Assembly: GCA_000708835.1 (NCBI GenBank)
Contig: DF238762.1
Location: forward strand, 62,001-126,000
DNA from: Klebsormidium nitens
Taxonomy: Eukaryota; Plantae; Klebsormidiophyceae
Direction of reading: 5' to 3'
Length of the DNA stretch: 64,000 nucleotides
The notes under the pieces were generated by a model, which saw only the letters and a list, made by a program, of their open reading frames with translations, was not told where the DNA came from and ran no database searches. Of this stretch, positions 7,018-8,612 are shown in pieces. How positions within the stretch are numbered: position 1 is the stretch's first letter; every line of letters begins with the position of its first letter. Made by a program: the position numbers and the translations under genes.

Positions 7018-7021
7018 GTGC

Positions 7022-7481
7022 TTGTGATTATCTATTACAATTTTTATACTATGACTCTTTAGAAGTTATACCGAGTGGTATGATTTGGCAGCTAATAGAG
7101 CGAATAAAATTAGACTTATGAGACAATTTAAATAAATAGGTAATTTAGGCAAAATGTTTTTAACGAAAATCTTCTTTACGCACATCGGAGAAGAATCAAT
7201 TCATTGGAACAAAAGTTTTACCAAGTCGCATGAGTCCGAGAATAATTGTGAGAAGATAATTCTTTCTCTAGAAACTTAATTGTAATGAATATTACAAACT
7301 TATATGATTCAATTTCATTTAAAAAACTAGAGATAGAAGGGAAAAATGAATAAAAAATTAAACTTTCGTCTCTTTATATTTTTAAATTCAGTAAAAAGAT
7401 TTAAAAAGAGACAGGGCCGTATGAGTTAAAAACTCGTGTCCGGCCCGATGAGAGGAAAACCAAAAGGTTTTCTATCCAGGC
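7022..7481 (+). other. Internal group II intron A nested in petB intron
   Basis: 5' TTGTG, domain V 7414-7446, bulged A 7474 at -8, EBS1 GCACAT (7180-7185) in hairpin loop pairs with preceding GTGTGC. Confidence 0.82.
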
Positions 7482-7753
7482 GACTCGCATCTCTCTTTGT
7501 AAATGATTAAAACAATAAAATCATTAGTCGACTCAGGCTTTGTCTTCGGTGACGGAGAAAAGTAATGCTTGAGTAGGATTGGAGTTTCAACAATCCTGTA
7601 CCGATTTTTTTAAAAATTAGGTTCGTTTAAACAAATGTGCAATTAAAAAACCTTAAAAGTTAGATAAAAAAAAAGCTGGAGTTTGATCAAATCCTTTGAA
7701 TAAACTTCTTTATACCAGTTCTATTTATATAAGGTATAGCATAGGCCTAACAC

Positions 7754-8365
7754 GTGTGAATTGAAGAAACCCATAGATAAAATATTATGACCTTTACTTC
7801 TTAATTCTATTTAAAAGATAAAAAAGTACTTAACTTTTTTGCTTAAAAGGTCTAATTCACTAAAGCGCTCTCTTTTGCCTCTTACAGAAAGGGTAAGAAG
7901 AAAATAACATAGGAGAAATATACAAAAAAGATAAGAAGATATTTTCAATTTTGTAAAAATGCATTTTAGCTTGTATTGACACTTGTATTGTTTTTTGAAT
8001 TGTAAGACAAGCTTATCGTGCTAGATAAAAAATGATTCTAAACATATTTTTTATGCTATCGAAGTACTGAGTGTTAGTATTTTGGATAAAACATTGAAGC
8101 ATAAAACACAATTTTGCAAAGTCTATTCTTATAAAAACAAAAAGTAGTGTCGAATATTTTGCTTTCAATCTAAGGAATAAACCAATAAATCTTAACAAAA
8201 TGAAAAAGAGCCAATAATAAAAGGTATGGCAAACTATATCTAACAAGATTGTTACTTTTTTACAAGTAAAACTTAATTGATATCAGTTTAGAGCCGTGTG
8301 CCTATAGTTTTGCATGCACGTCTCGAAGTGAATTAGTCAGGTAATCTATTAGCCTAACTCATTTT
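7754..8365 (+). other. Internal group II intron B nested in petB intron (3' end +/-1 nt)
   Basis: 5' GTGTG, domain V 8291-8324, EBS1 GTGTTA (8071-8076) in AAGTAC/GTATTT hairpin pairs with preceding TAACAC. Confidence 0.8.
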
Positions 8366-8612
8366 CTGTTCTACGAAATAAACAAAAGAGAAGACGAGAT
8401 AGTTTTTACTAGGCAGAAAAAATTTGAACTATCCTAGTACAAAAGATAAAATAATTTGTATCTTTCCGAAGATATGAATTGTGCCAACTAATAAATTAGA
8501 AAAACATAAATTATTTTTTATATTTTTTGTTATTAGTATGAGCCGGACGATGCACAAGCTTCATGTCCGATTCTAAAATGGAGGAAAGCTTTTATAGTTT
8601 TCCTATCGAATT

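Follow-up and report, generated by a model that had tools for sequence, protein, structure and literature searches.

How many introns interrupt the petB gene of Klebsormidium nitens, a single one or several nested in each other? In the 64,000-nucleotide stretch of plastome DNA analyzed here (contig DF238762.1 of assembly GCA_000708835.1, positions 62,001 to 126,000; hereafter the window), petB exon 1 (ATGGGT, Met-Gly, 7012-7017) and exon 2 (8613-9254) are separated by 1595 nucleotides (nt; 7018-8612), and an initial annotation of this DNA had proposed that two group II introns are nested in the petB intron. Our analysis indicated that the petB intron is probably a complex twintron, in which an ancestral streptophyte group II host was invaded twice by small group II introns without a long open reading frame (ORF). 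These inner introns are named A (460 nt, 7022-7481) and B (616 nt, 7754-8369) below, and all features of the petB locus lie on the + strand. The support for the nested introns was of two kinds: B was cut out separately in RNA, and A was indicated by its structure, covariation, exon-binding site 1 (EBS1), termini and orthologous introns. The outer ends of the twintron were defined independently, by the two exons and by the introns that orthologs carry at this position. Exon 1 was read from the sequence, and the same ATGGGT stood 5' of the intron in Chara and Chaetosphaeridium. Exon 2, taken from the sequence and the ORF list, with a Pfam Cytochrome_B match in the genes called at related loci, opened at 8613 with AAAGTCTACGATTGG, and petB of intronless relatives read ATGGGCAAAGTATAC or ATGGGTAAAGTATAC.

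The three modules of domain V (DV) and domain VI (DVI) that had been reported between the exons were found at 7414-7481, 8291-8369 and 8540-8612. A DV covariance model was trained on seven other DVs of the plastome, with those of A and B excluded, and was run on both strands of the 64 kb with filters off. Beyond its training members the model matched the second DV of cemA (29.1 bits), the DV of clpP (24.9 bits), the DV of A (7414-7446; 24.5 bits, E 5e-4) and the DV of B (8291-8324; 18.8 bits, E 0.016), and the next matches reached 14 bits or less, the best of these being antisense copies of the training DVs. The host DV, itself a training member, scored 43.7 bits. Because a model built without A and B found both of them and its next matches were no higher than 14 bits, the three DV modules are real.

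RNA evidence was drawn from assembled contigs, not reads; those of three RNA runs, together with those of a DNA-type run (X15), were aligned on positions 6800-9000. The RNA runs came from three separate studies and comprised a metatranscriptome (X9), a run labelled with the source organism (X25) and a run labelled with another organism (X26). Contigs drop rare variants, and the filter used left a hole at 8650-8723. A joint of 7753 to 8370, skipping 616 nt bounded by GT..GT with zero positional ambiguity, was present in X9, X25 and X26 and was absent from the contigs of X15. A single 845-nt contig of X25 consisted of 7240-7753 followed by 8370-8700 with 0 mismatches; it had lost B and retained the 3' junction of A, the 3' part of the host and the border between intron and exon 2. 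In X26, the depth was 313 for the B-joined form, 218 for a contig with unspliced B (7724-8399) and 425 for the downstream host, and the depth of the B interior was below that of its flanks in the same RNA runs. Thus, splicing removes B separately, from RNA in which the remaining host intron is retained, and the B-less intermediate expected by the initial annotation was recovered. The 3' end of B had been placed at 8365; the contigs put it at 8369, which makes B 4 nt longer. With regard to order, these data showed that B can be excised ahead of both A and the host. The depth profile was also considered as a gauge of A removal and was rejected, since contig depths are whole-contig means and X9 mixes strains.

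The conservation of the composite intron was evaluated in nine plastome loci of Klebsormidium type obtained by an exact-protein look-up of PsbH, including the source assembly (L006, GCA_000708835.1), whose petB region does not differ from that of the window. The length of the composite intron was 1600-1668 nt across 9/9 loci, the identity of their petB introns to that of the window ranged from 98.6% to 76.5%, and A and B were present in 9/9. Conserved positions clustered in the parts expected to form ribozyme cores: the fraction of invariant columns was 0.90 in the DV-DVI of A and 0.58 in its body, 0.80 in the DV of B and 0.60 in its body, 0.84 in the DV-DVI of the host, and 0.90 in the first 30 nt from exon 1. 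The EBS1 of A and of B and their targets, the intron-binding sites 1 (IBS1), were all invariant among the loci. A and B are old enough to be common to lineages whose petB introns differ by 24%. For the covariation counts given below, controls were made by sliding the pairing partners by 1-3 columns; the alignments that gave these counts had also been used to derive the structures, and the counts are therefore tilted in favour of the structures.

B starts with GUGUGA, and its first nucleotides (GUGUG) matched the 5' consensus GUGYG. Its EBS1, GUGUUAG (8071-8077), was the perfect complement of the IBS1, CUAACAC (7747-7753), which lies inside domain I of the host; it was the sole perfect 7-mer complement within B, and such a match arose by chance in about 2% of shuffles. 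The consensus fold of B was multi-domain with about 97% of cells paired, and 11 pairs were changed on both sides, compared with 1-4 in the slid controls. The DVI of B (8325-8365) formed a helix with compensatory changes from U-A to G-C and from G-C to A-U, and the basal pair of the DV changed from G-C to A-U in L004 and L007, the two most divergent loci. A candidate pairing of EBS2 with IBS2 (8051-8059 with 7736-7744) was not kept in L004 and L007. In the same two loci the start of B read ACGUGA (L004:5172) and AUGUGA (L007:5159), compared with GUGUGA, and the end read UAU, compared with UGU.

For A, the IBS1 was GGUGUGC (7015-7021), which is composed of the last 3 nt of exon 1 and the GUGC of the host. 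It pairs with the EBS1 GCACAUC (7180-7186), located in the loop of a hairpin at 7170-7194, whose stem showed a compensatory change from C-G to U-A. This 7-mer was the sole complement within A, again with a chance of about 2% in shuffles, and the proposal that the EBS1 of each inner intron is complementary to the nucleotides just upstream of that intron was borne out for both. The consensus fold of A contained a closing helix of domain I (D1), D2-D4 helices, DV and DVI, with 112 pairs and 97.3% of cells paired; nine pairs were changed on both sides, compared with 0-5 in the slid controls, and the fold of 7400-7485, which covers the DV and DVI, had z = -4.1. The DV, GGGCCGUAUGAGUU-AAA-AACUCGUGUCCGGCCC, varied across eight aligned sequences solely at its closing pair, from U-A to U-G (7433, A to G). 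The DVI (7449-7478) folded with an unpaired A at 7474, 8 nt from the 3' end (-8). Its loop, AAAA in the majority of loci, was UUCG in three divergent ones, and one G-U pair was changed to A-U.

The termini of A were shared with two other introns of the plastome. The rpl36 group II intron (51620 to 51100, - strand, 521 nt) follows codon 11, its ends being fixed by the frame MKVRASVRKIC|, and it reads UUGCGAUC...CCUAUCCAAGC, while A reads UUGUGAUU...CUAUCCAGGC. The borders of A were accordingly placed by homology to an intron with frame-certain borders, and since the rpl36 intron starts with UUGCG, the U at position 1 of A (5' UUGUGAU) is a family trait. An ACAGAU in the rpl36 intron was complementary to its own upstream AUCUGU, and its DV scored 34.9 bits in Rfam, below the threshold. 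This intron is missing from Table 2 of Civan et al. 2014. The second relative, the psbZ-leader intron (34095-34575, +), lies 3' of a Shine-Dalgarno-like motif (AAGGAG) and 5' of the start codon of psbZ and reads UUGCGAUC...CCUAUUCCUGC, with the UUGCGAU start and a DVI which the DVI of A resembles. It also has a U-rich/A-rich EBS1 hairpin as in A, the loop of which, CUCUUUG, matched its own upstream CAAGGAG. The ends common to the three introns were 5' UUGYGAU and 3' CUAUYC..GC. As the family members were only 42-47% identical overall, the copies are old. When pieces of A, B and the host were compared with the window by blastn, only similarity at the level of DV/DVI was obtained (A and the psbZ-leader intron, E 0.004), and no recent paralogous copies were found in the window. 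Seven introns unique to Klebsormidium have been ascribed to intragenomic proliferation (Lemieux, Otis & Turmel 2016, PMC4877394). A is like such Klebsormidium-specific small introns (rpl36, psbZ-leader) in its ends, DVI and EBS1 hairpin, but these sit in genes or leaders, whereas A sits within another intron. Taken together, the structure, the covariation, the target-matched EBS1, the termini shared with rpl36 and the host 5' end restored by its removal indicated that A is probably a separate group II intron.

The host intron then consists of 7018-7021, 7482-7753 and 8370-8612, 519 nt in total. The coherent pairings that had been claimed for the host after removal of both inserts were found, and the claimed length of about 523 nt was not. 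A splits the host 5' motif GUGCG after its fourth nt, so that GUGC (7018-7021) is severed from the remainder; joining 7021 to 7482 gave GUGCGACUCG. The 5' part of domain I (7482-7753) contains a strand, 7484-7500, that pairs with 8382-8398, and this D1 closing helix spans the site of B. According to the folds, Rfam and the DV model, the 3' part (8370-8612) contains the other strand of this helix (8382-8398), D2-D4, DV (8540-8573) and DVI (8582-8604), followed by an unpaired A8605 eight nt from the intron end. The consensus fold of the host was multi-domain, with about 97% of cells paired and nine pairs changed on both sides, compared with 0-5 in the slid controls.

Orthologous introns provided an uninvaded reference for the host. 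After ATGGGT, the intron started with GUGUGACUUG in Chara and Chaetosphaeridium, with GUGUGACCUG in L020 and with GGGUGGCUUG in L014, the latter two being metagenomic streptophyte algae; the site of A was uninterrupted in all four orthologs, and the insertions of both A and B were absent from them. A host element, GUAUAGCAUA..CUAA (7734-7750), aligned with the Chara ortholog, and just 5' of B the host GUAUAGCAUAGGCCUAA was aligned to GUAUAGCAUAAAUCUAA of Chara. An [A/G]YCUA motif there can pair with UGGGU of exon 1 in Klebsormidium and Chara and, as ACCUA, in L020, and 7745-7749 is the best candidate for the host EBS1. Another candidate, ACCCAU at 7769-7774 within B, is a perfect complement of exon 1 and was rejected because it was not conserved among lineages. 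B was inserted in host domain I, with the candidate host EBS1 4 nt to its 5' side and the 3' strand of the D1 closing helix 12 nt to its 3' side, and it plausibly interrupts the EBS1 loop. An empty site was also sought in closer outgroups: contigs bearing psbH relatives at 92% identity stop before petB, and the contig collection contained none from Entransia. Relatives with PsbH 77-82% identical (L010:3526-4173, L011, L019:1241-1870) had an intronless petB starting with MGKVYDW. Exact-pattern scans of JGI metagenome contigs for the host D1 start and the host DV gave no match.

Several observations weigh against a petB twintron with two working inner introns. The second intermediate foreseen by the initial annotation, lacking 7022-7481, did not appear: the joint 7021 to 7482 was in no contig of the three RNA runs, a 1152-nt contig of X26 ran unbroken across both the 5' and the 3' junction of A, and the 845-nt contig of X25 was unbroken across its 3' junction. 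The mature joint 7017 to 8613 was likewise not listed among the contigs of these runs, and because this joint was also missed and rare variants are dropped, contigs are an insensitive assay and the missing A joint counts for little. Two of the three RNA runs were labelled merely 'RNA?'. A has U, not G, at position 1 (UUGUG; positions 2-5 fit GUGYG), and the triad of its DV is GGC, compared with the consensus AGC. In B, the upper helix of the DV is weak in this strain, the fold of 8280-8370 (DV and DVI) was no better than that of shuffles (z = -0.76), a clear branch or bulged A at -7/-8 was not seen in the DVI, the intron ends in GU, and its first nucleotides are AU or AC rather than GU in two divergent loci. 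The host EBS1 is not firmly placed, so the interruption of an essential element by B is suggested by its position only.

The Rfam family Intron_gpII had been expected to give three hits in the petB intron. Only the terminal DV/DVI was matched (8538-8615), with 29.2 bits compared with a gathering score of 40, and at that threshold there was no match anywhere in the petB intron. Rfam therefore supported the terminal module only; with the plastid D5 model the DV of A scored 17.5 bits and the DV of B was not matched. Several other introns of the plastome, including the frame-anchored rpl36 intron, obtained just 33-35 bits in Rfam. As these introns also score below the threshold, the Rfam check is too weak here, and caution is needed in general, as most introns of this genome fall below the Intron_gpII threshold.

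The most serious rival explanation, which we nevertheless consider unlikely, is a half-live twintron, in which B works and A is a 'zombie' that leaves only together with the host, whose 5' end would then be GUGCU. Zombie twintrons are documented in plant mitochondria (PMC10012718; PMC7049729), and the lack of an A-less contig in the three RNA runs, the contigs crossing the A junctions, the U at position 1 and the GGC in the DV triad speak for it. Against it stands the purifying selection on the core, fold and EBS1 of A. The DV-DVI of A was as conserved as that of the host (0.90, compared with 0.58 for the A body), nine compensatory pairs maintain the fold, the EBS1 loop and its target were invariant, and in the DVI loop AAAA gave way to UUCG, which is stable. 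Such conservation, compensatory pairs, invariant EBS1 and UUCG loop are unexpected in a dead sequence, and a dead A is disfavoured. In addition, a host retaining A would be without G5 and its D1 closing helix would start 467 nt from the 5' end, and the U1 start is normal for the intron family of A.

A twintron with two functional inner introns was also preferred over three further explanations. That the joint 7753 to 8370 reflects a DNA variant, i.e., plastome or nuclear copies without B, or an artefact of reverse transcription is very improbable. It could draw on the presumed nature of two of the three RNA runs and on the use of contigs rather than reads; yet none of the nine DNA loci, the source assembly among them, lacked B, and the joint was absent from X15, was without microhomology, started exactly at the GUGUGA after the EBS1 target of B and recurred in three studies, in which the B interior had lower depth than its flanks. 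Even less credible is a single long degenerate petB intron, excised whole as a 1595-nt unit, whose inner DV-like hairpins would be due to chance or dead. The absence of a Rfam match at threshold inside the intron and the z of -0.76 for the DV/DVI of B would suit such an intron, but the separate excision of B in RNA contradicts it for B, the independent DV model found both inner DVs, and conservation peaks and covariation were present in both inserts. Finally, three tandem introns with small exons between them, for which the cemA gene of the same plastome (58823-59835) with two DVs of two introns around a 27-nt micro-exon offers a precedent, can practically be dismissed, because the petB product starts with MG| and intronless relatives read MGKVYDWF without room for extra residues, because with A removed the ATGGGT frame meets TAA after 11 codons, and because 7482-7753 and 8370-8398 supply the two strands of a single D1 closing helix.

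Under the preferred twintron reading, a three-step pathway can be proposed for the psbH-petB precursor. The EBS1 of B, GUGUUAG, would bind CUAACAC and B would be excised, which is the step seen in RNA. The EBS1 of A, GCACAUC, would bind GGUGUGC, and the excision of A would rebuild GUGC|GACUCG. The repaired host would then fold and join ATGGGT to AAAGTC, the product expected from the orthologs. Judged by the positions of A and B, the host would require the prior removal of both, and splicing would be strictly ordered. Since the longest ORF in A, B or the host was at most 77 aa and the DVs of all three were off consensus, protein factors acting in trans are presumably needed for the splicing of A, B and the host.

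Other introns of the plastome and the neighbours of petB were also recorded. The interruption of cemA (58823-59835, +) contained DVs at 59244-59277 and 59766-59803. The second of these was considered as a sign of another twintron, which was rejected; cemA seems to hold two group II introns in tandem, which flank a 27-nt micro-exon (59320-59346) for IYELFYSLS. This micro-exon continues what we take to be a conserved CemA motif, ELFYSLS|DTMKAF. Civan et al. 2014 (PMC4007539) give cemA only one intron. Among the group II matches of Rfam in the window, the highest score (49.2 bits) was obtained at 10309-10401 (+), with UUGCGAU at 9999, directly 5' of an ORF called Photo_RC (psbA type) in related loci. 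This agrees with the account of Lemieux et al. 2016 (PMC4877394), in which psbA is split and has an intron fragment. A DV at 3680-3714 (-), with 24.9 bits in the local DV model and unreported by Rfam, lies just 5' of a clpP exon and presumably belongs to the Klebsormidium clpP intron. The gene order around petB was psbB-psbT-psbN-psbH-petB-petD. The petD gene of land plants carries an intron. In the window, petD (9329-9811, +) was a single ORF of 160 codons with no interruption, in agreement with Table 2 of Civan et al. 2014 (PMC4007539), where Klebsormidium has an intron in petB but not in petD.

The arrangement of petB bears on several views of plastid introns. It bears on plastome intron counts, as Civan et al. 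2014 (PMC4007539) give petB one intron, on the nuclear-encoded splicing factors that would handle a three-step splicing pathway, and on the spread of ORF-less group II introns inside a streptophyte plastid. An intron common to Klebsormidium and land plants was itself invaded twice, and the composite was kept across the sampled Klebsormidium-type lineages. Chloroplast introns of land plants are regarded as immobile and positionally frozen. A bolder interpretation, to which we assign little probability, is that ORF-less group II introns have been mobile in the primary plastid of a streptophyte, presumably in trans, and that the petB cascade is retained as a gate or timer of cytochrome b6 production and is not neutral baggage. 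The psbA-linked ORF of the plastome for a reverse transcriptase/maturase (Lemieux et al. 2016, PMC4877394) is a candidate for mobilising such introns in trans.

The initial annotation knew of no such arrangement in streptophyte plastids, and our literature searches agreed with it: they yielded no report of a twintron in a green-lineage primary plastid, in a search to which subscription journals were mostly out of reach, so that absence is unproven. Neither a twintron nor a nested intron is mentioned in Civan et al. 2014 (PMC4007539) and Lemieux et al. 2016 (PMC4877394). Twintrons are well known from euglenid, cryptophyte and red-algal plastids, cyanobacteria and fungal mitochondria. Among these, the twintrons of cryptophytes, Porphyridium and Trichodesmium are described as nested group II introns with sequential excision in which a mobile intron invades a resident one, as in petB. 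Many of the cryptophyte, red-algal and cyanobacterial inner introns encode a reverse transcriptase/maturase and were recently mobile, whereas A and B have no long ORF.

Twintrons of plant mitochondria have been called the first in Viridiplantae or the green lineage (Zumkeller, Gerke & Knoop 2020, PMC7049729). They are like petB in that a group II intron is nested in a group II intron in an organelle of Viridiplantae, with paralogs of the inner intron elsewhere in the genome, and the set includes the functional twintron atp9i87g2, the one case in which serial splicing was shown by RNA, together with 'zombie' twintrons (PMC7049729). They differ from petB in that they are mitochondrial, have one inner intron each, and in several cases no longer splice separately (PMC7049729). 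In the plastid twintrons of Euglena, as proposed for petB, a group II intron lies in functional parts of another and the inner one is removed first, an outer intron may hold several inner ones, and the introns are small, ORF-less and degenerate. The settings are different: Euglena has a secondary plastid with more than 100 introns and involvement of group III introns, while the streptophyte plastid of Klebsormidium is primary and its introns number about a dozen. Unlike in Euglena, the petB host is an ancient intron common to land plants, and one of its two inserts splits the 5' GUGCG itself.

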